Source: Vitrella brassicaformis CCMP3155 (lineage: Eukaryota > Protista > Chromerida). From it: a DNA stretch of 64,000 bases. Of this stretch, positions 12,370 through 48,301 are shown piece by piece. Every line of letters starts with the position of its first letter. The stretch's first letter is position 1. The notes under the pieces were generated by a model that worked only from the letters and a program-made list of their open reading frames with translations, was not told where the DNA came from and did no database searches. The position numbers and the translations under genes are program-made. The stretch lies in assembly GCA_001179505.1 (NCBI GenBank), contig CDMY01000356.1, positions 124,001 to 188,000 on the forward strand. Reading direction: 5' to 3'.

Positions 12370-13320
12370 CAAAAGGATTGTGTCCTTGTTGCTGCATCCA
12401 TGTGTGTGTGGGTGGATGGGAACTCGTTATCTTGGGCTCTGACGAGGTGCTTTGTTTCGACTTTGAGACGTATTTGTGGGTGGGTGGGTGGATGAGTCAG
12501 TCGAGGCTTTCGTGTCTGTCGCGTTTTGCATGACACCACGCCCTGCCTGCGTCCAGGCCAGGCGGATGTGATGATGTGTGTGTATTGATTGACCAATGTT
12601 GGTTGACAAATCATGATTCACTCGACGATATGATGCATCAGTCGGTCGGTCATCAGTCAGTCCACTCACTCACTCACTCATCGGTCTTGTCGGCCAGCAA
12701 GTACAGTCAGTGCACGAATCGCGGCAACTGCCTGTCTGTCTGTCTTGTCTGATGATCCCTGTCTGCCTCTTTGCCTCTCTGCTGCTGCCTGTCTGTCTGT
12801 CTGTCTGTCTGAGGTGAAGAAGGGCTGAGTGGGAGTGCATTCTCCTACTCCCTTCGCACACGCACACGCACATACACACACACACACACACATGGATGAA
12901 ACTCACATGAGCACAACGAACGGAAGACGTGCACCGGGTCCGTTGCAGCCTCGCCCAGCCTGCACCAAAACTGCTCCTACGATGGTATGTCTGCCTGGCG
13001 TGTGTCATCTCCTGCTTTATGTTCAGCGTCGCCAAGCTTGATACGGACCTCTACGGGCAACAGACGTAAGCTCATAGAGGCCTATACCAAGCTGCTGCAT
13101 GACATAAAGCAGGAGACGACCACGCTTCAAGGCCTTGCTCGATTATGTCTTGTCCATCCCCCCTTCCCCCCCCCCAACACAAGGAAAAAACCAACACAAC
13201 CCTCACCAACACAACAGCGAGCATTTAAACGCCCTACACCCAATCTCAGCCCAGCAACTCTTCATCCATCCACACACGCAGGCAATGCACCCATTGACGG
13301 CTTGCCTCCCTCTGCTCCAT

Positions 13321-13940
13321 CTAGGAGTAGAGGAGGAGTGCGGCCATGAGTACGACGACAATGCCGAGGAACTCCAGGAAGCCCATACCGATGAGGGTGT
13401 AGGTGAAGAGGTCCTCCTTGATCGACGGATTGCGCGCCGTGCCGCTCACCAGGGCCGCGAACAGGCTGCCGATACCTTGCGCCACGCCGCCCACTGCCAT
13501 CAGGGCGATGGCCGCACCCAGAGTGGCCACGCCGGCCTCGTGACGCACCTGCAGGGCCGTGCAGCCGCCCGATGGATGGTGGAGGGTCAACGCCAACACC
13601 TTGCTCTGGCTCAGAGGGGTCAGCCCGCCTGCACCAAGGCACACAGAACAGAAAGAACAACATGGTGAGTGAGCGGATGGTTGTTGCCTGTGTGTGGCGT
13701 GTTTCTGTCTGTGTTTGTGACGGTACAGTTGTTGTTGAGGCTGAGTGCCCGTGGCTGTGTGGATGGCTGGGGCTGCGTGAGGGGCTTCTGAAACATCGGG
13801 GACGTTGAGAACTTACGGCACACCAGCGTGTGACTGATACACACACACATCCACACACAACCACAGCACAGATGCAGAGGGAGACAGAGACCTCCTTCAT
13901 CGCTGCCTGATCTGGTGGCCGTCTGTATTGCTTACGCCAT
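13321..13940 (-). CDS. ATP9: Mitochondrial ATP synthase F0 subunit c, nucleus-encoded with presequence
   Basis: ATLGAAIALMAVGGVAQGIGSLFAALVSGTARNPSIKEDLFTYTLIGMGFLEFLGIVVVLMAALLLYS, with RNP loop and conserved Glu. Spliced start ATG GC|gtaagc...cag|T CAC gives MAHTLVCRKFSTSPMF. Confidence 0.95.
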
Positions 13941-14188
13941 GGAGAATGATCCGAGCTGGAATGAGCGGCTGCACGACGGCAGCGCCATGCTGCGGGGGAT
14001 CACCCTCGACGCAATGCTGCCGAACATGTTGGCGAGGGCTAAGGCGGCAGATTTGGCGACAGACGAGGCTCACAGCACTGCAGCAGACGGCCGAAATGCC
14101 TTCTTTTCTCGCAAGAGCTCGCAAGATGGTGCAGCAAGAGCTCGCAAAAAACGCGAAAGGTTTATCGCTTTACAGCTGAAGGTAGACG

Positions 14189-33030: not shown

Positions 33031-33909
33031 CTTGAAGCTGGCGATGGATCGGATTCATGACGTTGAGTACCGTTGAGTTTGACTGGCAAAAATTGATGCA
33101 CGCATCGTCTGTCCATTGTCAGGAAGCCATGCTCATGCACTTTGCCTCACTTGGATACACAGCGCCCCATGACATGCACGGCGGTCTGCTGGCTCATGCA
33201 TGACCAGGGTGGCAAGAAGAATGCATGGCAAGGCAGGTGACATGACACCCACGTGTGGAGCATGCATACCGCAGGTGAGAGCTGGCATTAGCTAGCGTCA
33301 TCCAAAACGATCAAAAGGCATCCATCCGACATTAGCAGGAGAGGGGCGACTTCGCATCGATAGAGACCGAAATGAATCGCCACACGTACGGATGCATTTT
33401 TTTACGACTGACAAGCACACTGCCCCCCCTCACTTGGCTTGCACCGTCCACACTACACCACACCGCACGCGCCCATTGGATCGAGTCATTCGGTAGCTGT
33501 ACAGACAGACACATCCCCGCCGAAGAGGAAGGACAAGACGGCAGAGAGGCAGGAGAAACCACCACCCACCCGCACACTAACACGCACCCCACACACCACA
33601 CCACACCACACCACACCACACCACCGCGCCTGGCTGGCTGGCTGGCTGGCATGGCACACATGTGGCCATACAGGCAGGAGGGAGGCAAGCACGAGGAGGG
33701 ACATGCCACACGACACAGAGAGGAGGGAGATATATGGGGTGGGGTCGCATCCAGCTGGAAAAATCCCCTGGCTGCTCTCGTCAGGATCGACGAAAGAGTA
33801 GGAGGCATATCTTCACGGGACGCAGCCCTTCCCTCTAAACACGCCCGTCGATCGATAGTAGCACACGCAGGTAGGCACCCCTCCCCTCCCCCACACGCCA
33901 TCCCATCGC

Positions 33910-35019
33910 TTAGTAGTAAGACCCGTCAGCCTTGCCCTGTGCGTCCAGCAGTCCCTTCCAGTAGTTCTTCTCAAAGTTGGCCTTGGCGCTTGAGTCTACG
34001 AGGACCTCAATGGTGCGGCCGCGCTGCCTGACAGGGAAGGTGGCCAGGTTTTGGGGCGGCCTGAGCTTGCCGGTGAGGGGGCCGACGAGGGGCGGGAAGG
34101 GGCACCAGTCGCCCACCACCTCACCGCTCTCGAGCGAGAAGGCCGTGCGGTGCAGAGGGCAGACGACCTTGCCGTCCTTGACCTCGCCTTGCTCCAAGGG
34201 CGTGCCGATGTGCGGACAGACGTTGGCCACGCAGTAGATGCTGCCGTCGGCGTCGGCAACCAGCAGCAGATTCAACCCGTTCACCTGAATGACGAAGGAA
34301 GCCACAGACGGACGGACGGACGGGTCGACGGACGGATGTATGAGGCTGGAAAAAATGTGGTGGTCCTGCTGTGTGGATCTTCCTTCCCATTGCACTGACC
34401 TGGACAGGCACGAGGTCGCCCGCGGCGATCTCGTCATCGTTGAGCACCGCCTTCCACTCCTGAGCCTGCAAGTATGCAGCCAGCCAGCCAGCCGCACAGC
34501 ACGCAGCAACAGATGACTGCCTCATGCCGTCGGTTATCTATCGAGAGAGGCTCGTGACTGAGTGCGTACGGTGGCAGTTGCGGCTCCGAAGACGGCATTC
34601 AAACGGGATCGGTAGGAACGTTGGGGCGCATCACCGTGCCTCTGCAGACACCGCATACACCAACCAGACCGATTCATAAATCCACCACAGATAGATGCGC
34701 TTGCTGATCTCTCATATATCAGCTCATTTGTCTGGTCACGTCACACATACATACATACCAGCTGATAGAAGGTTGGTGACACCCCCAGCTGGCCATGTCG
34801 GTCAGTGGCAACTGTACTCCTTTGTGAGAGGCACTGCTGCCCAGCAGGGGAGGGGAGCACGAATCCACTGACGCCTCCTGCAGCAAGAAATGGACACACG
34901 GACATATACATACACCAAACCAAAAGCATTATTGACCACACACTGATCTCCCCGTCCACCATCTCTTCATCCCGCGTCCCACCTGCAAGCAGGGTGAGTG
35001 CTGCAATGGCCGTCTTCAT
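33910..35019 (-). CDS. Rieske [2Fe-2S] ferredoxin-like protein with bipartite (plastid-type) leader
   Basis: Cluster boxes CPHIG and CPLH; spliced leader MKTAIAALTLLAGGVSG|FVLPSP (signal peptide followed by Phe). Confidence 0.9.
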
Positions 35020-35182
35020 TTGCAGATGTTCAGCCTGCTATCAAAATTCTTAAGCTGCCCGACTCCTGCCTTTTGAACCCTTGGCTTTGAACTCCTGCCA
35101 CCGGATTGGCTGCGCCGTAAATTCTCCTGTTTTACGCGAATGACCTCTACCCCAGACACTGAAACCCCGGAGTCGGAGGCCG

Positions 35183-35674
35183 ATGGTTTTTAACAGTCCC
35201 CCAGCGGCGCCCGGCAGCCATGCCGGTGTGCCTCTTGGTGTTTCGGCTCAGCTGAGGAGTCAAGTGTCGCCGAGGCTCGTGGACAGCGTGTCGCGCAGCT
35301 TCTCGCTCACGTCCCTGGTCGGCAACTGGCGTGCCAGAGCCCTCGCGAGCAGCGGCAGCAATGCCAGCCAGGCCATGCCCTTCTCGTTTGGCAACGTGGC
35401 GCGGTGAGTGAGGGACGGAGGGAGGGAGGGACGCAGACGCGCGTGTTCGGCGGATGTACCACCCACTCACTTGTCTGTGTTGTTTACGTGCTTTGTGTGT
35501 GTGTGCGTGTGTGTTGTGTGCAGTTGTGACCACGGTGAGTGGTGGCGTTGGGATATGGGCGGCCACGACCCGGCGAGTCCCTTCATGGAGTCGACCATCA
35601 ACTACCACAACCACGCCGTGTCGTACATGGTGTTCGTCATGTGCACCGTCATGTACTGCCTGCGCAGACTCTGA
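35183..35674 (+). CDS. Nucleus-encoded cytochrome c oxidase subunit 2 N-terminal fragment (presequence + first TM segment only), 123 aa, 2 exons (35183-35403, 35524-35674)
   Basis: CDHGEWWRWDMGGHDPASPFMESTINYHNHAVSYMVFVMCTVMYCLRRL* aligns without gaps from WDMG onward to the Cox2 N-terminal pattern W.LG.QD.A.P.M..II..H...; Ser/Arg/Ala-rich leader. Confidence 0.75.
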
Positions 35675-35874
35675 GGGAGTCAGCAAGGAATGGGCTCTCG
35701 GAATGGGCTCTCGGCACACACCACACCACAGCATAGGACAGCATGCCAGCCAACCGGACCTTTCAAGCAACCGAGCAAGGACGCAGTAGCCGGCTTGTCT
35801 TGACTGACTCACAATCACTGACTGGCTGCCTTTAGTGTGTGTGTGTGTGGTGGGGGGGGGGGGGTTGTTGTGCG

Positions 35875-36174
35875 NNNNNNNNNNNNNNNNNNNNNNNNNN
35901 NNNNNNNNNNNNNNNNNNNNNNNNNNNNNNNNNNNNNNNNNNNNNNNNNNNNNNNNNNNNNNNNNNNNNNNNNNNNNNNNNNNNNNNNNNNNNNNNNNNN
36001 NNNNNNNNNNNNNNNNNNNNNNNNNNNNNNNNNNNNNNNNNNNNNNNNNNNNNNNNNNNNNNNNNNNNNNNNNNNNNNNNNNNNNNNNNNNNNNNNNNNN
36101 NNNNNNNNNNNNNNNNNNNNNNNNNNNNNNNNNNNNNNNNNNNNNNNNNNNNNNNNNNNNNNNNNNNNNNNNNN
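35875..36174. other. Assembly gap (about 300 N) with duplicated poly-G-TTGTTGTGCG flanks
   Basis: Both flanks carry G(n)TTGTTGTGCG, suggesting overlapping contig ends. Confidence 0.9.
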
Positions 36175-36963
36175 GGGGGGGGGGGGGTTGTTGTGCGTGA
36201 AGAGCCTGTGAAACCCGTGTGTGTTCCTCTTTTTTGGCCTGCTGGCATCGTCGTTTGATTGGAACTCTGATGGTGCACCTCTATCAGAGCTCCTTCTCTC
36301 GACGTGGTGGCGGTGCTAGCTTGCAGAGAGGCATGGCACAGACGGTGCTCGTGTGGTGTCTGGCTGCCTTCGTATGTACTGCTGTGCGGCGTTTCTGCTG
36401 CATGCATTGATTGCAATGCTGGGAGGTGCAGTGCGCCTGGTGGGGTGGGGCACCATCTGTCTCCACACCTGAGAAGAGGGTGACCTGACAAGGCACCCAG
36501 GAATGGAATGAAGGCAGAGATGACCCCTCTCCACCAGATGGCCATCGATCACTCAGTCAGTGCACATGGCCTTTTTGCCCTTCCTTGTCCTCATGCTCTG
36601 CATGTCTGTCTGCCTGGCTCGCAATCGTGAACTGTTTGTCTGTGTGTATCTGTCTGTGTACACTAATGAATGAATGCCGGCCGGATGGTGGCAAAACTCC
36701 CTAGACGAATGAATCGGTCAATTCACTGATCATATCATCTTAGCTCGTTGTCGCTGGCCGTTTGACACACGCACACACACATCCATCCATCCATCCACTG
36801 CACGTAAGCGCGAGTCAGCCACCGCCAACACTGCCTAGCCTACTACCACAGACAAAAACCACTACCTCATGCCACGCCACTGACAGACACACCACCAACA
36901 AACGCCTCCCTCTCTCCCCCTCTCCATCCATATATCGCTTGATCTGCCAATGTGTGTATGTAT

Positions 36964-39900
36964 CTACAAGCCCTTACTGAACCAGACGTCGACGAACTCG
37001 TTGCGCGGACTTGTCATTTGGAAGAAGCGGTTCATGCGGGCCAGTCGTTTCGCTCTCTTCAGGGCCTTCTCGGGCCTCCTGGGGTCAAGAGGGTTCTCGA
37101 GGAACGCACGGTTGAACTCGAAGTCCTCCTCGGGGTTGGGCCGGGCGCTGTATTGGTGCCGCATGCGGCTGACCAGCGCGTCCTCCTCCTTCTCGGACAG
37201 AAGGTCCTTCAGCCGCACGCTCAGCGTGAAGCTGCCCGCTTGGGGAGGACCCTCCTCGTTCTCCAAATGAAACATGAACCTGAACAGCAGACACACAGAC
37301 AGACACACAAACACACAGACATCATGGGAGGGATGGAAATGCCNNNNNNNNNNNNNNNNNNNNNNNNNNNNNNNNNNNNNNNNNNNNNNNNNNNNNNNNN
37401 NNNNNNNNNNNNNNNNNNNNNNNNNNNNNNNNNNNNNNNNNNNNNNNNNNNNNNNNNNNNNNNNNNNNNNNNNNNNNNNNNNNNNNNNNNNNNNNNNNNN
37501 NNNNNNNNNNNNNNNNNNNNNNNNNNNNNNNNNNNNNNNNNNNNNNNNNNNNNNNNNNNNNNNNNNNNNNNNNNNNNNNNNNNNNNNNNNNNNNNNNNNN
37601 NNNNNNNNNNNNNNNNNNNNNNNNNNNNNNNNNNNNNNNNNNNCCTTTTGGTGGCTTTGGCCATGAAGGTCTGTATGAATGATCGAGCGAGGTATTCGCC
37701 GACGGCGGGGCACATCCTGGGTCCCTCGCCGAAAGGGATGGATGCGCAGTTGAGTGCGTTGGCCTCGCCGCTGCCGACCATGCGGACGAGCTCCTCCTTG
37801 AAGTGGCTCTTGGCCTCGCCGAAGTGGTAGTAGGGTATGGTCTGCTCGTCGAAGAACCACTTGAGCGACGGCGGGACCCACCGGTACGGCCAGAAGTGGG
37901 TCGCATACGCCCAGTAGGAAGGGTGGTGGTGCAGCAGCTGAGGCGATACCAGAACCTGCACACACACAGAGATACACACGACACGACAATGTCTGACAAG
38001 TTCGTTCATGTCTGACTGACACGGGAGGCCAGCTATCCGCCCGCCCAGCCCCAGCCACCCACGTACCTCAGTGCCCTCAGCGAATTTGAGGTCTTTGTAT
38101 CTGACGTTCCGCGAGCAGGTCCGCGAGATGAATGCGGTGGGCGGCAGGAGGCGCATGGCCTCCTGCACGACGTACCCCACAAACACGCTCGACGGCAGCT
38201 CCAGCACATCCAGCCCCTCCTCGGACTCGTCCACACTCTCGTTGGCGCCTTGCCCCTCCCCCTCCCGCTCCTCGTTGACACGCCGCTCCTTGGCCCGCAA
38301 CAGCTCTGGGCCCTCTGTTTCGGTGGTCTCCTCATCTGCCGTCTCATCTGGAAGGCTCTCATCTGTCTTGTTCTCCCCAACATCCTCTGTCCGTGCTGAC
38401 GAGCTGAAGGAGCGAGACGCACCTGCAGGATGGTCGGTGGCGGGGCGGGGGGCGGGGCTGGGGTTGGGGAGGTCATCAGCGGAGGTTGATGCAGATGCCT
38501 CTGGTGGTGGGGGGGCGAAGGTGGCCATGCGGATGGACTCGCCGTCGTCCTTGCGGGCGATGAACGGGTCTCGGCCGTTGCTGTCTGTGTCAGTGTTGTT
38601 TCCGGCGGTGTCCGCTGCGCCTTTCACCTGTGGGTAAGCCGGGTTCTTGGACTTCTTCTGGAATATGTACTTGCGGGTGCCCTCGACGGTTTGGAACTGC
38701 AGGTGGGGAGTGCCGGCAGTCACCCACATTGTCGTGGTTAAACCTGAATGAATGAACGGGCACCGAAAGGAGGGAGGGGAGACAGACAAGAGCCTTCCTG
38801 TATGTGTCTCTCTTCCTCCCTCCTCCCTCCCCCCCTCCCTCCCTCTCCTACCCCTCCCTCTCCTACCTTTGATGGCCGGTAGGTGTATGTGTCTGTGCAG
38901 CTGCAGCAGCATCAGCACCACCTCACTCACGCTCATCTCCACCCTCGCACCGTCAAATGCCGGCACTGGTCCTTCCTCCCCCTCCCCCTCTGATGCATCA
39001 TCCCCCGCCTCCTCGCCGCTGGCACTCTCCCCCGCTTTGACCACTCGAATGGTGCCGGGCCGCCTCGGGGCTGGTGATGTTGCCGCTGCTGGCTCGTCGT
39101 CTGGTGCGCTTGATTTGATGTGGAACTGGGGGGAGTCGAGGAGGAGGTTGAGGAAGGACTGGCCGTTTTTGGTGATGACGGCGCCGTCCTTGCCCTTGCG
39201 GCGGTAGAAGCGGTGGAGGTTGACGTAGTCACGCACACGCTGCTCCAACTCTGCAGACAGTGTAAGGGAGGGCAGGGCCACATGACGACATATCTACGAT
39301 GCATGGCTCGATGCAGCGGCCCCTTCTGCCTCCCTCCCTCCCTCCCTCCCTCCCTGCCTCTCACCCTTGAGGTCTTCCTCGAGTTTGGAGTACATGCCCG
39401 ATGGCAGGTGTCGCCAGTAAGGCCAGTGGTGCTCCAGCCTGTCCCACCCCTTGATGGCCCTCTCAATCACCGCCTCGAGCGGCCGCTGCTTCTCCTCTTG
39501 GTTGGCCAGCATCTCCGTCTGAGTGCACAGGTGCTCGCCAAACAGCACGTGGGCCACGGTGGAGAAGTGCCAGCTCTTGATGTGGCGGGGGAAGTCGTCA
39601 ACCCATGTGTCGCGGATCTTGTCCTCCCTCAGGGTGTCTGCCCACGACGGCATCTTCCTCCCCGTTGACTTTTCATAAGCGGCCTGCACGCCCAGACCAG
39701 CAGCCAGCCCAAGACAGACAGACAGACAGACAGACATGAGTGCATTCATGACACACACGACGCCACATGGCCTGTCCGTCCGGTGAGGGTGGCGGCTTGG
39801 CTTGGCTTACAGTGCGGTCCTTCTCTGCTTGTGTCTTCTCCTTGTTGAGGTGTATGAGGGGCAGCTCCCACTCGTCGAAGAGCGCGGCCATGCGCTTGTC

Positions 39901-40702
39901 CAGCTCCTGATTCATGAAGCTGCGGAAGTCCTCACCAGACACCAGCCGCACCGCCGCACGACGCACCTCCCGCCCGCGATCACTCGAGTCGTATAGGTGC
40001 GTCAAGGGGGCAGCCGACTGGCCATCCTGACCCTGATCGTGCGCCGCCTGACGCTTCTCAAGTATGCTCCACATGTCCTGGAACACGGCATCTGGCGGCC
40101 TGGTAGACAGACAGACACAGAGAGGAGAGGCATTAGCCTGCCATCGGTTGCTCCCTTCTGCCTTGGTCATTCATTGCTCACGGGTGTTGCCATGCGTCGG
40201 TTTCGTCTTTGAGTATGGCCTCTGCCAGCCCAGGGTCGCCGCACACCACCACCTCCCTGGCCAGCAGACCGGGACGAACCACAAACACACTGCCGCAGCG
40301 AGCAGCAAACTCGAGAATCTGTCACTCACAGACACAACCAAATCCGCACAGTCATATTCACGTGTGCATCTATCTGTTGTGGTGTGTCGCGCGCAGGGTC
40401 ACTCACTTGGCCCTGGAGGCTCGACGCTCGAAGACTGAAGATGGAACCTGCAAAGCGAACAGATAGGCACACACAACAAGTGTAATGCACAGTGCAAGCA
40501 ATTCCCTACTCCATCGGCATGCCCTCTCACCATTGAACAGCGGCATGTTTGACACACGGGGCAGCAGGGGCATCTTCACCTGGTCCCTTCCTTTAGCCCC
40601 GGTCACCGCTTGCAGACACAGCGCCACATATCTGCCAATAGCGCCCCCATCGACAGTGCCGCTGACCAGGCCGGCCGGGAGGCTCAGGCTTTTGGGCAGC
40701 AT
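36964..40702 (-). CDS. Cytochrome P450 with a long acidic insertion; 5' end uncertain
   Basis: GSVFVV..VVVCGDPGLAEAILK, I-helix IKGLTTT, EAMR (ExxR), WPYRW, heme motif PFGEGPRMCPA. The N-gap at 37344-37643 falls inside an intron. Confidence 0.88.
37344..37643. other. Assembly gap (300 N) within a P450 intron
   Basis: N run; the flanking exons join in phase (..KAT KR|FMFH..). Confidence 0.9.
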
Positions 40703-41173
40703 CGCTCACTCACTCGACGATACGTACGCACAATGAACAGATCAGGGACAGATCTTCCTGCAATTGTTAGATGGCGTTCTCCTCGTGCTGAGGTGTATCT
40801 GTGGTGCTGGTCAGCTCAGAGCAACTGAACTCAACTCGAAAGCTCGCAGTCGTGAAACCGTTATCCGAGCGTCCCAACGAAAAGAGAACGCATAATAGCG
40901 TGGTGAAGCGCTTTGAGCAGAGCATTTGGTTCCTTCTTGACCAGCGTATCTTACACATCTGTTTGTCGGTGAGCAGATGCATCTCGGTGGGAACTGCACT
41001 CGCAGACAGGACAGGGAGAGCAGGTTGTGTGTGGACGTGTGGGTGTGGCGAGAGTGCCGGGATGGGAGAGAGGGAAGGCGGGGGTGCGTCGTGCGTGATC
41101 TGTCATGTCTCTCCTGCATACATGTGTTTGTCCTCCGTCAGATACGATAGCCTGTTAGTGTTTGAGTGGTGAG

Positions 41174-41898
41174 ATGGCGTACTACGACCCCAACTACCAC
41201 ATGAGCATCCACGCGATGAACCGCGCGGCGATGCGACATGCACCTGTGCAGCAGGTGGGTGGGCTGGGCTGGGGATGGTCTCGCACATTTCGCATGACCA
41301 TTTTCCCGCTGTCTGTATGTGTGTTTTGTGCAGGAGCATGTGCCCACGTTGGAGACGCCTCAGTTGGTGGCGACTGTGGCCCCTGCTCACGCCGTGCCGA
41401 TGGCAGTGCCAATGTATGGCCACTACACCTACACCACACCCAGCCCTAGCATCCACCACCAGGTACGCCAACACGCATGGCCAGAGACTGTGCTCGCGTG
41501 TGCATACGTCTCATCTCGTGGTTGCGTGTCAGAACTACCTAGTACAGACTCACCAGATGGTCCCTCCGATGCACCCCACGCAACCTGTTCCTGTGGTGAG
41601 CACCTGCAGGCACCTGCACACCACACACTCACACACAGCAGAGGGAGGCATCAATCCGGTGGGCCACACATGTGTATGTGTCTTGTGTGTGCGTCAGGCG
41701 CATCCGTTGTGTGTGCCGGTTGGTGGCTCGATCTCCCACCTCAACTACGTCATGGCGCAGAGCCCGCACCTGAGCCACCCGACGGCCATGTACACGCCGC
41801 CCAACATGGTGGGCATGCCACCCCAGACGGCCGCCCAGCCCGCGCCCGAGAAGAAACCAGAGCTGGAGGGGCAGGGGCAGGCCAACAAGACCCAGTAG
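41174..41898 (+). CDS. Hypothetical Pro/His/Met/Tyr-rich low-complexity protein, 4 exons
   Basis: MAYYDPNYHMSIHAMNRAAM...PEKKPELEGQGQANKTQ*; in-phase GT-AG introns. Confidence 0.65.
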
Positions 41899-42034
41899 AT
41901 CAACAAACAAGGGGCAGGGGAGGGAGGGGACTGCGTGGCGGGTGTGTGTGTTTCTAGTGGGGTGGATGGGGGATGCCTGAGTGAATGGGTGTGTATCTAT
42001 GGGTGGTGGCTTGGCTGTGTGATACCTGGGTGGG

Positions 42035-42163
42035 TATTCACTTCCTCTCTGGCACTTGCCTCGCTGGAGGAGCAGACAGGTGACCAGACACGCTGTTTCT
42101 CCTTCGTGTCTGGTCAGGGGTCTGCTCGTTGGGTGAGATAAGTGCAGAGAGAGGGAAGGAATG
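42035..42163. ncRNA. Long fold-back hairpin (pre-miRNA-like candidate H2)
   Basis: Perfect 12-bp apical stem TGACCAGACACG (42081-92) / CGTGTCTGGTCA (42105-16), then GAGCAGAC/GTCTGCTC (8 bp) and further in-register pairing out to 42035/42163. Confidence 0.45.
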
Positions 42164-43146
42164 GCACACACCCCAACTAGCAGCTCGCAATTTTCAGCCA
42201 CACAATCAATGTAGTGGTACATACAATACATGCGCACATACATGTACGTGTGAGCGCCACGACAGACCACACCACACCACGCGAGCAGCGGCCTCACTAG
42301 CTCTTTTTTTATCCCCCTCAGGAACACACACGATGGCAGACAGGTGCTCGTGAGCGGCGAGTGTGCGTGTGTTGTTGTGCATTGATAACGGACGAGGCTG
42401 GCTGCCATGTCGCGTTGTCTCCCACCCAATCGCTGAGTGGACGGCTGCAGTGTATGTGTGTGTATGTATGTGTGTATGTGTAAGCGCAGAGAGGGCATTT
42501 TTCCGGCCTTGAGCTCCTGTGGTTTTCTCTTGCTCGGTCGCGTGCATGGTGCAGTCGCTGTCGTGTATGGATAATGTGGATGCATCGATGCATTGGTCCT
42601 CTTATGTGCCTGCCTGCCTGGATGGATGGATAGAATGGCGTCTGTGTTGAGAGAGCGAGAGAGCGGTGTGTGTATTACCTTTCCTCCCCTCCATTCCCTC
42701 TCGCCCTTTTCCTGCCTGCCTGCCATCGGCTTGTTTGCCTCAATGCCTGGCGTCTGCATGTATACTAAGGGCAGCCTATATATGGTATGGATCAAGTCAC
42801 ACGAAGTGTCCTGTGATGTCATGTGAAGTGAGTGTGTTGGATGTCACCGCACCGCTACCACTGACTGACTGACTGGCTGACCGATTTGTTGGGGAGGGGC
42901 CAAAGGGACGCTCGTTTTCTCGGCGAGACCGCACACGTGCGGGCAGTCGGGCGGCACCCGTCCGACGGCCAGCCGGCCGATCTTGTGTGTGTGTGTGTGT
43001 GTGTGTCTCCATCCTTTTTCCGCTCCCCCAGTTGGAGCATTGCCGAGCGACCCGACCCATGTACACATACAAACAAATGTACTTGCCATGATGCTGTCTG
43101 TCTTTGAGTACATGTGTGTGGCTGGCTGATTGGATGGCGTGGGGGG

Positions 43147-43446
43147 NNNNNNNNNNNNNNNNNNNNNNNNNNNNNNNNNNNNNNNNNNNNNNNNNNNNNN
43201 NNNNNNNNNNNNNNNNNNNNNNNNNNNNNNNNNNNNNNNNNNNNNNNNNNNNNNNNNNNNNNNNNNNNNNNNNNNNNNNNNNNNNNNNNNNNNNNNNNNN
43301 NNNNNNNNNNNNNNNNNNNNNNNNNNNNNNNNNNNNNNNNNNNNNNNNNNNNNNNNNNNNNNNNNNNNNNNNNNNNNNNNNNNNNNNNNNNNNNNNNNNN
43401 NNNNNNNNNNNNNNNNNNNNNNNNNNNNNNNNNNNNNNNNNNNNNN
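43147..43446. other. Assembly gap (300 N)
   Basis: N run flanked by G tracts. Confidence 0.9.
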
Positions 43447-44275
43447 GGGGTGGGGGGGGGGAGAGTGACCCGGTTATGTGCTCGCTGCAGAGGTGTTTGT
43501 CGTCGCGGACGTGCCCTGCTCGCCTCATGTCTGGCCTCATGTCAGTACAGCACGTGAGGTCAGGAGGGACGTGAGCGGCGACACACACCGCTGGAGAAAC
43601 ACTTGACAAGACGGCTGACTGGTGGGGGGTTTCTGTGAATGTGAGCGTGTCCTCTTTGGGAGAGGGGAAAAAAGTGCTCGTCTGCTTTGTCGCGTCTGGC
43701 ACTCCAGAGCGAGAGAGCATTCGTGTTCACCAGCCGCACCGACCGGGTCATTGACGCAAGCCTCCAGATGTGGAAACTTGTGTCCATGTCTCAGGAGGGG
43801 CGGCGGGATACACGAGTGTCTCTCTCCTCTGTGCGCCGAGAAGGGGTTCGGTCAGGGGAGGGGGGGGGAGGACAAGAACTGTATGAGCTTTGATTGATGC
43901 AGTGATATCACGGTCAAGGGATGAGGAACGAGCTGTTGAAAAATGAAACTGCAGCAAATCATTCTTCACATGTATACAAGCTTCCATGTATAGAGAAGGA
44001 GCGCCCCGAACGACCAAGCCACCGGCGGCCAACGACCCCCACTTAAATGGCCGATTTAGTGGTGTGCGCCGGTAGGTGCGCAGTGCGCAGTATCCGTGAG
44101 GGACTGGTATCACATACTTGACGTGGAGAACGAACGCATCATACATACAAACTTGGTTCAGGACAGAAAAAAGTCAATGAGCACTGGACAAACCCAACCG
44201 AGAAATGCCGCCTCCCTCCCTCCAATCAGTCCGTCCCCAGCACATCCACACCAATGTCTGTGTGTGCGCATATAT

Positions 44276-44849
44276 CTAAGTGCCGTATGCCTCGTGGAAG
44301 CCCCTCGTGCAACCTGACAACCACAAACACACACACAAACACACTCCACGCGTCCTCTGTCTAGACCAGATCTGATTAATGTGTCGACACACACCAGGGG
44401 CATTGGGGTCTTCCTCACCGCAGCAATCCCTGCACACACACGGAGAGAGAGTTCACGGACGCGCACCAGTAGCGTGCGGATCCCTCTCACTCTCACCAGT
44501 AGTGTCCAGGCCACTTGTCGTGTTTGGGCACCTCTTCTACGGCCGCATAATACTGACATACACATGATTGCGTCAATCACACTCAGACGGGCCTGCACAT
44601 AGCTGCCGTACCTTAGCGCCTTCTGGGTGGTACCTGCAGACAAACTCCTTCTTGTGATGCTGGCAGCTCGTCGCCGAGTTTGTCGTCACGTCAAACTCCT
44701 GAACAAAGGCAGCCAGCGGATGAAGGGAGTCACGTCGATGGACGGAATTCATCGCTTACCTGTTTGCATTTTCGACACTTCCTTGCGTTCTTCGGGGGGA
44801 TAGATGAAGCGGCGCCACTGTGGGAAACACTGTCCTTTGTTGTTGCCAT
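44276..44849 (-). CDS. Small (about 101 aa) Cys/His-rich zinc-binding protein, 5 exons, not captured as one ORF in the ORF track
   Basis: Spliced product MATTKDS..KCRKCKQ|EFDVTTNSATSCQHHKKEFVCRYHPEGAK|YYAAVEEVPKHDKWPGHYW|DCCGEEDPNAPG|CTRGFHEAYGT*; all four introns are GT-AG and in phase. Confidence 0.8.
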
Positions 44850-45111
44850 CTCTGCTCCTCCGAATAAGTTTTGAGCTCGCCACAGTGGATCGCGGCTCCC
44901 TCCTCCCTCCCGACCAACCGAGGGTGCTTCATCACAACAGAAAACCCGGCTTTTGTCAAAAATTAAGATGAGCTGCTTCCATCTCACTCTCTCTATCATC
45001 GCACTTCCGGGGAGGCTTCAAGTTCAGAAGACCGCAGCCTGACGGAACAGCAGGTGTAGTGTCGGCGTCCCTTATTGACACGGGTGTGTCCGTCCATCTA
45101 TATCATCGACA

Positions 45112-46299
45112 ATGCTGCGGGAGATCTTGTTTCGGTTATGCCCGTGTCTGCATTGGCTCTTCCGCACGACCAACTATGCCGAGCTCGACACGTCCGTCGG
45201 TGACATCGTATCGCCGCGCGTCTTCGGCGCCCGCCAATTCAACAAGGGCGGCTTCGACCTCAACGATGTCCCCGACACAGTGGCGAGCACCGAGTATGAC
45301 ATGGGCGGCCGGGGGCTGAAGATAGTGGAGCTTCCCCCGCAGCTGCAGCCACGAGCAGACGCCTATGCACATGGCGGCGCGGGGAACGGCCAGGTGGATC
45401 TCGAGGCGCCTGAGGGGCAGGGGAGCCATCCGGGCGACAGTGAGCATCGGGGGGAGGTGGTGAGGAGGATGGCGGATGCGCTCAAGGGCGACGAGGAGGC
45501 GCTGGCATCGCTGGACCGCGGCAAGGTGACGCCGACCCAAGTCAAGCTGATATTCGACCGCTTCGCTAATGACGACCTGCGGGCGATCTGCCAGGGCATC
45601 AAGCAGTGCCGCACCATGAAGTCGGTTGAGTTTGGATGCAACTCGTTTGGCGACCAGGGTGTGTCGATCATCTGCGAGTGCCTCCGCCACGCCGACCAGC
45701 TGAGGTCCATCGCCATCTGGGGCAACTCTGTCGGTGACGAGGGCGCCCACAGCCTCATGGACCTGCTCAGCTCATGCCCCGGCCTCGTCAATGTGGTCTT
45801 GTCGAACAACGAGATCACCGACAGTGGCCTGACCTCCCTGTCCCTCGCCCTCCCCTCCTGCACCGCCCTCCGCTCCCTCGACCTCTCCGTCAATGCGGCG
45901 CTGTCCGACGCAGGTGTGCAGTCGCTCGTGCGGGCTCTCAAAGACGAGGCAAGCTGCAGCCTCGAGAACCTCAATCTCAACAATGACTCTGTTGGGAACG
46001 ACGGGGCCAAGGCGCTGGCCACGTGGCTGGCCAAGAGGCCGCGGGAGGGCGCCTCGACCGTCACCGACAGTGGCTGTCCGCTCATCACTCTCGACTTGAG
46101 CTACAACATGGTGGAGGACACTGGCGCCCGTGCGCTGGCTGAGGGGCTGGAGAAGAACGGCAAGCTGATCGAGCTGAATTTGAGCGGCAATCTGCTGAGT
46201 GACAGCGGTGCGCATCGGCTGCTCAAGACGCTGGGCAAGGGCACTGATGTGCCTGGTCGGTCGATTCTGATAGAGGAGATGACCACGGTTAGGGCATAG
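45112..46299 (+). CDS. Intronless RNI-like leucine-rich-repeat protein (395 aa)
   Basis: About 28-aa repeats such as LRSLDLSVNAALSDAGVQSL, LENLNLNNDSVGNDGAKAL, LITLDLSYNMVEDTGARAL. Confidence 0.88.
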   Translation: MLREILFRLCPCLHWLFRTTNYAELDTSVGDIVSPRVFGARQFNKGGFDLNDVPDTVASTEYDMGGRGLKIVELPPQLQPRADAYAHGGAGNGQVDLEAPEGQGSHPGDSEHRGEVVRRMADALKGDEEALASLDRGKVTPTQVKLIFDRFANDDLRAICQGIKQCRTMKSVEFGCNSFGDQGVSIICECLRHADQLRSIAIWGNSVGDEGAHSLMDLLSSCPGLVNVVLSNNEITDSGLTSLSLALPSCTALRSLDLSVNAALSDAGVQSLVRALKDEASCSLENLNLNNDSVGNDGAKALATWLAKRPREGASTVTDSGCPLITLDLSYNMVEDTGARALAEGLEKNGKLIELNLSGNLLSDSGAHRLLKTLGKGTDVPGRSILIEEMTTVRA

Positions 46300-46704
46300 C
46301 ATAGCGTTCCTCCATGACGAGAAGAGAGATGACAGCAGCGTTTATTTGTGTGCAAGACGAGAATGTGACGACTCTTTCTGTGGCCCTTGTATACACCTGA
46401 ATGAGGGGCGTTAGCGTGAGAGTACGAGCGCATTATCACCAAATGCCATGCCACTTATCCCACTTATCAGTACCAATCATCCATCACCAAGCTGACATGA
46501 GGTCGGTCCCGCGTCTCTGCGATTGACCCCAACACATGCACGTGTCGGCAAAACCGACAAATGGACAGAGAGGTAGAGAGACCAACGAGCATCGGGAGCC
46601 GCGAAGCCCCTGCAGCAAAGAATGAGGGCAACGAAGGAAAACTAGCCCAAGGCGAGAGAGGAGAGAGAAAAGGGTCGAGTCCAAGCAAGGAAGTCAATGG
46701 GAAG

Positions 46705-48301
46705 TCATTTCATCACTGCGTTCCATATAAATCCGACGCAGCCGATCAGGCAGATGACCAGGATGATGCGGCAGAAGAAGTTGCTGTTCTTCTGCTCCTC
46801 CTGCACACGCAATTACGGGCAAGCACACAGAGAGAGGACCAACCATCCATCCACTATCAAGCCACCCGTTTCGCATGCACGAGCCAGGCAGGCAGCCCAC
46901 CATGAACTTTTTGAGTTTGACGTTCATTTTGTTGAGTTCGGCTGATGCCTTCTCGGCCGTCTTCTGTATCTCTGCCGCCATGGCCGTCTGCTTGTCGGCC
47001 GTCTGAACAACAAGAAATCACACGCAGGGACACCCCCATCGATGCATCCACACGCGACAAGGGAGACATACACCTGTCTGTCTGTCTGTCTGCCCTTCCG
47101 TGTATCGATGGCCTTTCAGTCTGCGGACCACGTTGATTTGTGTTGCGATCTCGCCGAGCCGCTCGACGCCCTCACCGATCTCCTCCACTTGCTTGTCCTG
47201 CATCACACACACAGACGAGCATGAGGCAATGCATTGCTTACTCATTCACGTCCGATCCTTTGTTTGTGTGTGGCTTGGCTTGGCTGGCAAATGCTTACAA
47301 ATTGCGCGTCTCTGTGCTTCCATCGATACATTGCCCTCTCTTCATCCTCAGTTGGGGACCTGATGGAATGACACAAGTGTGGAGAGACACACACGCAGAG
47401 ACATGAATGAAAACTTGCATTCATCCTCCTCCTGCTGCTGCTGCTGCTGCTGCTAGTGCCCGGCTTACATTGGCTGTCCCCCGGTGCTGTCGACTTGAAT
47501 GTGCACACCGCCCGCAGACAGACCTAGGCCTGCCCTGAGAGACATAGCAGGCAAACAGTCAATATGTTCCCCTGCTTGTTTTTGTCACTTTGCTGTCCTT
47601 TCGTCACCTCTGTTCGAGTACGGTTTTGATTTCGATGTCGTCCTCCCTGTTGAGAGCGCCTCCCGTCTTGAAGCTGGTCTTGGCCTCCTCCAACTGCTTC
47701 TTCATGATCTGCAGCGCCTGGAACCGACTCTCTAGCTCCGTCTCCTCAAACTTCTGCACTCACCCAATCCACGGATGCATCCATTCCATGGTGCGGCAAC
47801 CAACACAGACAGACAGACAGACAGACGTGTGTGCCTGCGCATGTGTGGGTGGGGTTGTTCTTTGGTTGTTTCCTCACTCCTCACTCTCACTCACCCTTCT
47901 CTGGTTGCTTTGTTTCTTGTAGAGCTCCTGTATCTTCTTGAAGTCGGCATCGAGGGACTTGAGTGTGTCGGTGATGAAGACGCCCTTCTGGATGACCTCG
48001 AACGAGTTGCCCACCCGCTTCTGCAGCACCTGCCGCTCGCGAATGGCCTCCTTGACCTCAAACAGGGCCGAGTATATGTCCTCCTTCAGTCGCAGGAACT
48101 CGTCCTTGGGGCCGTCTTTACGGTCCTTGGCCGCCTTGTCGATGGAACCGCACTCCTCCTGGATGCGCTCCAGACGCTTCAGCAGCTCATCCACACCTAC
48201 ACACACACACATACATGACATGCAGCGCAAGAACAGAGAGATTGCAATGAATAAAGGAATGATTCGTGTCGGAAGCAAGTACCGTGCAAAGAAGACGCCA
48301 T
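46705..48301 (-). CDS. Qc-type SNARE (SYP7/syntaxin-6/8-like) with C-terminal TM anchor
   Basis: N-terminal helical region, SNARE heptads QDKQVEEIGEGVERLGEIATQIN..ELNKMNVKLKK, and tail NFFCRIILVICLIGCVGFIWNAVMK*. Confidence 0.85.

Follow-up and report, generated by a model that had tools for sequence, protein, structure and literature searches.

Chlorophycean algae have a two-way split of cox2, and the same arrangement was formerly assumed for apicomplexans and dinoflagellates; in it, the two transmembrane helices of the subunit (TM1 and TM2) both belong to the cox2a product. A three-way split has since been described in two myzozoans. The COX2 of Perkinsus consists of three nuclear-encoded polypeptides, which contribute the first transmembrane helix, the second helix with two beta-strands, and the CuA head, respectively (bioRxiv 10.1101/2024.05.25.595893, 2024). 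The single-helix piece, named inconsistently in that preprint (COX2A in the text, COX2C in a legend), is a member of the Cox2c family, and the cryo-EM model places it at TM1 (bioRxiv 10.1101/2024.05.25.595893). COX2 of Toxoplasma gondii is likewise made of three polypeptides, as determined by cryo-EM, and its Cox2c is TGGT1_294230 (UniProt S7UHG8, 108 aa, PDB 9I4Y; NSMB 2025, PMC12350165). In both solved myzozoan complexes, a separate chain fills the TM1 position (bioRxiv 10.1101/2024.05.25.595893; PMC12350165). Cox2c went undetected by mass spectrometry in both Toxoplasma and Perkinsus (Perkinsus complexome paper), and the supplement of the Perkinsus complexome preprint contains no mention of Cox2c or of Vbra or Cvel identifiers.

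The published rationale for this arrangement is that cutting the helical hairpin yields less hydrophobic pieces, making nuclear encoding and import possible (bioRxiv 10.1101/2024.05.25.595893; PMC12350165); in this published view, it was the split hairpin that allowed the cox2 of myzozoans to relocate to the nucleus and their mitochondrial genomes to be reduced to three protein genes. The top matches reported for Toxoplasma Cox2c are A7AN81_BABBO, C6S3G8_PLAF7, C5LG07_PERM5, and A0A0G4F0W1_VITBC (E 2.7e-13), while Symbiodinium microadriaticum was scored without a Cox2c match, and the Vitrella top match for Toxoplasma Cox2a is A0A0G4EZK5 (PMC12350165).

Here, we describe a locus in a 64,000-nt window of Vitrella brassicaformis CCMP3155 contig CDMY01000356.1 (all positions below are those of this window). 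A first-pass annotation of the window had proposed that a separate nuclear gene at 35183–35674 encodes TM1 of Cox2 only, so that Cox2 would be made from three genes; homology, transcripts, and the Perkinsus and Toxoplasma cryo-EM models all support this proposal. We consider it highly likely that the gene is the V. brassicaformis Cox2c orthologue, the smallest of the three nuclear pieces that replace COX2 in myzozoans. The three-way split and the Cox2c family are already on record, and very probably so is this Vitrella gene: the published match A0A0G4F0W1 is probably the gene at 35183–35674, because its accession is close to that of A0A0G4F0V3 (CEM05152.1), a MYND-finger ORF within the window on the same contig, and because a 123-aa model is annotated here.

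Gene structure, transcript, and assembly gap

The public annotation of CDMY01000356.1 (GCA_001179505.1) places a gene at exactly 35183–35674, with a product of 123 residues and no Pfam family recorded; the annotated locus matches window positions 35112–56299 base for base, with the Cox2c gene at locus positions 72–563. The gene lies on the forward strand. Its start is the ATG at 35183, the first in frame, with an upstream in-frame stop at 35141 and no ATG between the two. Exon 1 (35183–35403; 221 nt, or 73 codons plus 2 nt) codes for the leader and has no Pfam match. It is followed by a 120-nt spliceosomal intron (35404–35523; GTGAGT...GCAG, GT..AG) in phase 2, which falls inside an Arg codon two residues before a conserved Asp. 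Exon 2 (coding part 35524–35671) encodes an acidic N-terminal tail of about 29 residues and then Cox2 TM helix 1, ending in RRL, and the TGA stop occupies 35672–35674. With the exons joined computationally, the spliced CDS comprises 372 nt and yields 123 aa, with no stop before the terminal one. These exon and intron limits, and the 123-aa product, agree with the two-exon ORF and Ser/Arg/Ala-rich leader of about 74 aa first read from the letters alone. The nuclear context of the gene is established, as is its spliceosomal intron. A second 123-aa ORF, found on Logan contig L004 and considered as a candidate spliced Cox2c transcript, was rejected; it is an unrelated ORF, and L004 is genomic DNA of window 39714–47453.

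The 74-aa leader contains 15 Ser, 10 Ala, 6 Arg, and a single acidic residue (Ser/Thr/Ala together 26 of 74), a presequence-like composition; it is presumed to be a mitochondrial presequence. The remaining tail of 48–49 aa has five acidic residues and one basic residue in its first 29 positions, followed by one hydrophobic helix and the C-terminal RRL, and the polypeptide ends three residues past TM1.

Contigs from four public runs were placed on window 34600–36960. Two sets (X1 and X2) are of RNA type, and two (X3 and X5) are DNA; the RNA nature of X1 and X2 is a guess, supported by three intron-less joints, namely that of Cox2c and two in a neighboring gene. Record 2 of X1 (1073 nt) comprises 35164–35402, then 35523–35830, then 21 letters, and then 36175–36679, an arrangement repeated in X2 records 6 and 8. 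The Cox2c intron is thus absent from X1 record 2 and X2 record 6, in which 35402/3 is joined to 35523/4, and is present in X3 and X5; the GT..AG polarity of the joint gives the forward strand for the transcript. As assembled contigs, X1 and X2 drop rare isoforms and do not give true 5′ or 3′ ends. The minimal 5′UTR, counted from the start of the X1 contig, is 35164–35182. At the other end, the contigs stop at 36679 (X1) and 36713 (X2), giving a 3′UTR of 35675–36713, or approximately 680–715 nt once a false gap is discounted.

That gap is a run of 300 N at 35875–36174, beside a poly-G tract and with a duplicated 23-nt flank. In both X3 record 10, which is DNA, and X1 record 2, only 21 nt lie between 35830 and 36175. 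A metagenomic relative of the locus, L001 (ENA ERZ893784, contig k147_4116472; 5152 nt), is also unbroken here, and its positions 2498–2519 align to both flanks. Because X3 record 10 spans the gap with only 21 nt, the gap is an assembly artefact hiding essentially nothing, as had been anticipated from the duplicated flanks. Of the four gaps of 300 N in the window, three, this one included, conceal almost nothing: the gap at 37344–37643 corresponds to about 32 nt in L001, and that at 43147–43446 is bridged by Logan contig L004 with a 3-nt overlap.

These observations bear on the possibility that the gene model is truncated, with exons in or after the gap encoding TM2 and the present gene forming only the 5′ part of a two-helix cox2a. 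A 300-N gap 200 nt past the stop and the GT dinucleotides within exon 2 would allow for such a model, and minor isoforms can be missed by contigs. But the RNA-type contigs run colinearly with the genome from exon 2 through the TGA and for some 680 nt more, to approximately 36680–36713, and no second splice follows the Cox2c intron in the assembled RNA-type contigs through the TGA and 3′UTR. The gap closes to about 21 nt in DNA contigs and in L001. No match to Pfam COX2_TM was found in the ten stop-free forward frames of 35601–36965, even at E ≤ 10; no TM2-coding sequence was found, then, either on the transcript, as covered by contigs through the 3′UTR, or in these downstream frames as compared with COX2_TM. 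Further, the indels that separate L001 from the window begin right after the stop, where nearly all homologues also end. The truncated model is largely refuted, and we consider it extremely unlikely. The first-pass annotation had described the sequence after the TGA as 3′UTR-like; in the RNA-type contigs, the stop is part of the mature mRNA and is followed by an unspliced 3′UTR. Measured against the refuting outcomes that the first-pass annotation had named, the results favor its reading: splicing from an internal donor to TM2 exons is not seen in the assembled transcripts, the gap conceals no exons, the tail has a significant match to COX2_TM, and the locus is transcribed.

The neighboring genes lie close on both sides. 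Upstream, a Rieske-domain gene (33910–35090, reverse strand) is divergent from Cox2c, and its L001 homologue matches PF00355 and PF13806. Its introns at 34642–34758 and 34877–34981 are absent from X1 and X2, in which 34641 is joined to 34759 and 34876 to 34982, with CT..AC ends. The contig of its first exon ends at 35090, and since at most 73 nt separate this end from the start of the Cox2c transcript contig at 35164, the promoter region between the genes is very compact and bidirectional. Downstream, a cytochrome P450 gene (36964–39281, reverse strand; an 858-aa product in the public annotation) is convergent with Cox2c, and its contigs start at 36716 and 36741, abutting the Cox2c 3′UTR. Farther away on the same nuclear contig, at approximately 13250–13960 on the reverse strand, lies a gene of the ATP synthase subunit c family (PF00137; 168-aa product), which may be another nuclear-encoded hydrophobic subunit of organellar type.

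The Cox2c family and its relation to COX2

Searched against Pfam, the 49-aa tail (35525–35671) matches COX2_TM with E 9.7e-5, over profile positions 4–42 of 88, which represent the TM1 half only. Taken alone, this single-sequence score is marginal, at 22.9 bits lying 0.1 bit over the cutoff of 22.8. It is therefore pertinent to ask whether the likeness to Cox2 TM1 could be fortuitous and the product an unrelated small mitochondrial membrane protein, and the borderline score is the point in favor of that reading. The homologues of the tail speak against it. A word-index homologue search with the tail gave no match, and the family was recovered when 1.8 billion representatives were searched exhaustively, the 49-aa tail serving as query and E ≤ 1e-3 as threshold. 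This search returned 27 matches, nine of which pass E ≤ 0.01 to COX2_TM. The profile built from the family matches human, mouse, and bovine COX2 (E 1.8e-5 to 1e-3) at residues ~5–42, and plant COX2 as well. The best match of the tail among solved structures is a 47-aa chain, 9fq7_4O (single-sequence E 2.1e-6), of the P. marinus respiratory supercomplex (9FQ7); the family profile covers this whole chain with E 3.3e-24, and in the cryo-EM model it is this Perkinsus member that is placed at TM1. A chance resemblance is in our view barely credible. The identification of the tail as the Cox2 N-terminus through TM1, proposed from its gapless likeness to plant-type COX2, accordingly stands, with the COX2_TM match and the canonical COX2 alignments in agreement.

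Twenty-six of the 27 matches are short proteins (41–176 aa) with the match at or near the C-terminus; the other, P0024, is an ordinary COX2 fragment carrying the start of TM2. Of the aligned homologue segments, 24 of 26 end within two residues of the Vitrella stop column. The family shares the motif GGHDPA(S/T)P..E..IN.H, which shows no variation in the alignment at G, P, A, P, E, I, or H. Its apicomplexan members come from Cardiosporidium cionae, Babesia bovis, B. microti, Cystoisospora suis, and Cyclospora cayetanensis, its perkinsid members from Perkinsus olseni, P. chesapeaki, and P. marinus, and its dinoflagellate members from Amphidinium carterae, Fugacium kawagutii, and Breviolum minutum. 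The B. bovis member (P0008) is A7AN81_BABBO, with E 2.8e-10 to the Vitrella tail, and the C. suis and C. cayetanensis members carry the annotation 'cytochrome c family oxidase subunit transmembrane domain protein'. The Toxoplasma Cox2c sequence was not among the matches of the PDB sequence searches made with the tail and with the family profile.

Several peculiarities of gene arrangement and naming were observed within the family. Tandem Cox2c genes occur in perkinsids and Symbiodiniaceae (Fugacium Skav225272/225273; Breviolum symbB.v1.2.033452/033453; the P0018 cluster), and the dinoflagellate members are often of this kind. The 176-aa P. chesapeaki protein P0009 (KAF4678025.1) contains two tandem TM1 units and probably represents merged adjacent genes, and the PDB name of Perkinsus chain 4O, 'GINS subunit domain-containing protein', likewise looks like the product of a merged gene model.

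Constraint, breakpoint, and the age of the split

The metagenomic contig L001 was found through its 74-aa ORF in a search with the leader; this ORF was the only match of the leader in the protein index, and the annotated 123-aa product was not among the matches. L001 is syntenic with window 33414–38600 at about 88–96% nucleotide identity and runs unbroken through two of the window gaps. Identity at this level suggests that the environmental sample contained either a divergent strain or a second Vitrella-like chromerid, as yet undescribed. Across the Cox2c gene, the comparison varies by feature. The 5′ flank is 84% identical; exon 1 is identical at 216 of 221 positions (97.7%), with four amino-acid changes that all fall in the leader; the intron is 78% identical, with indels; the coding part of exon 2 is identical at 147 of 148 positions (99.3%), its sole change being synonymous; and the 3′UTR is 87–88% identical, with many indels, the first of them directly after the conserved TGA. 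The exon, intron, and UTR identities therefore indicate constraint that begins at the ATG, peaks on the TM1 part, and is over at the TGA, and the Vitrella gene is shown to be under strong purifying selection.

This pattern is relevant to a further alternative, in which the gene, though expressed, is a redundant relic: Vitrella Cox2a would keep both transmembrane helices, and the Cox2c peptide would stay outside complex IV. Against this, the mature part shows no non-synonymous changes against L001, whose introns and UTRs differ by 13–22%, and the family is conserved across Myzozoa, with a separate chain at the TM1 site of both solved myzozoan complexes. By a rough measure, contig word depth, Cox2c is also similar to its well-covered neighbor and well above the P450 gene. 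We regard a redundant relic as very unlikely.

It had also been speculated that a relic mitochondrial codon, TGA read as Trp, set the breakpoint after TM1. Orthologue stop codons are mixed, with TGA in V. brassicaformis, P. olseni, and B. microti, TAA in C. suis and C. cionae, and TAG in B. bovis, and the end points of the orthologues vary by one to two residues. Because stop codons and end points differ in this way, we reject a TGA relic as the cause of the breakpoint as unsupported.

The intron at the seam between leader and tail is not confined to Vitrella: the annotated genes of C. cionae, B. bovis, and B. microti are interrupted at the same aligned codon, likewise in phase 2. The Cystoisospora model has no intron at the seam codon, and the introns of P. 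olseni appear to lie elsewhere, as judged from three reading frames without an exact exon model. The shared seam intron would fit a join between a targeting exon and the TM1 fragment that predates the divergence of chromerids and apicomplexans. The presence of members in the dinoflagellates Amphidinium, Fugacium, and Breviolum would date the three-way split itself to the myzozoan ancestor. The complete scenario, in which the split derives from the myzozoan ancestor, and the seam intron records a join of targeting exon and TM1 made in the chromerid–apicomplexan ancestor and later lost in coccidians, is one that we would judge evenly poised between right and wrong. Neither the shared seam intron nor the dinoflagellate members were found stated in the Perkinsus or Toxoplasma Cox2c papers.

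Proposed role and comparison with known systems

The mechanism proposed for Vitrella Cox2c rests on the Perkinsus and Toxoplasma structures and on what is generally known about mitochondrial import. The leader, of 74–75 aa, would direct import into mitochondria and would be cut near a conserved (A/V)-R-x-D seam. The mature peptide is predicted to start at the Asp, because the first residue of the Perkinsus chain is the Asp that aligns with Vitrella Asp76 (its end coincides with the C-terminus of the family), and it would then probably comprise about 48 aa. Its acidic N-terminal tail would be expected in the intermembrane space, with the basic C-terminal RRL toward the matrix, and the helix may pack against both Cox1 and TM2 of Cox2a, restoring the canonical two-helix anchor under the CuA domain of Cox2b. 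By analogy with the two solved complexes, Vitrella Cox2c would be a complex IV subunit at the Cox2 TM1 position.

The identification of this gene shows that free-living, photosynthetic Vitrella has the same TM1 piece, expressed and strongly constrained, and that such an arrangement is recognizable from raw sequence alone. What is added to the published record is a well-supported chromerid gene model, including its splice, stop, and 3′UTR, together with a corrected assembly gap. Further details are the seam intron common to some apicomplexans and the presence of the Cox2c family in dinoflagellates.

Among the described systems, Toxoplasma Cox2c is likewise nuclear and short and contributes a single helix of canonical Cox2, next to Cox2a and Cox2b; it shares B. 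bovis A7AN81 as a match with the Vitrella tail, whereas its leader differs from that of Vitrella in both length and sequence. The P. marinus chain 4O (9FQ7/9FQ8/9FZL) is homologous over its whole 47 aa and has the family motif in common. The Perkinsus family members related to this chain are approximately 34–40% identical to Vitrella Cox2c in the alignment. The introns of the Perkinsus genes appear to fall elsewhere. The chlorophycean cox2a and cox2b genes also represent a fragmented mitochondrial cox2 that moved to the nucleus, in pieces with long presequences. In a two-helix cox2a of the chlorophycean type, however, TM1 and TM2 stand on one polypeptide, whereas the Vitrella protein has TM1 alone and stops before TM2. 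Finally, residues ~5–42 of canonical COX2 (bovine 1OCC chain B, human 5Z62 chain B), comprising the N-terminal intermembrane-space segment and helix I, can be aligned with the tail without a gap, and the conserved pattern D..SP..E....H is common to both; unlike canonical COX2, Vitrella Cox2c is without TM2 and the CuA domain, and is encoded in the nucleus by a gene with an intron and a 74-aa leader.
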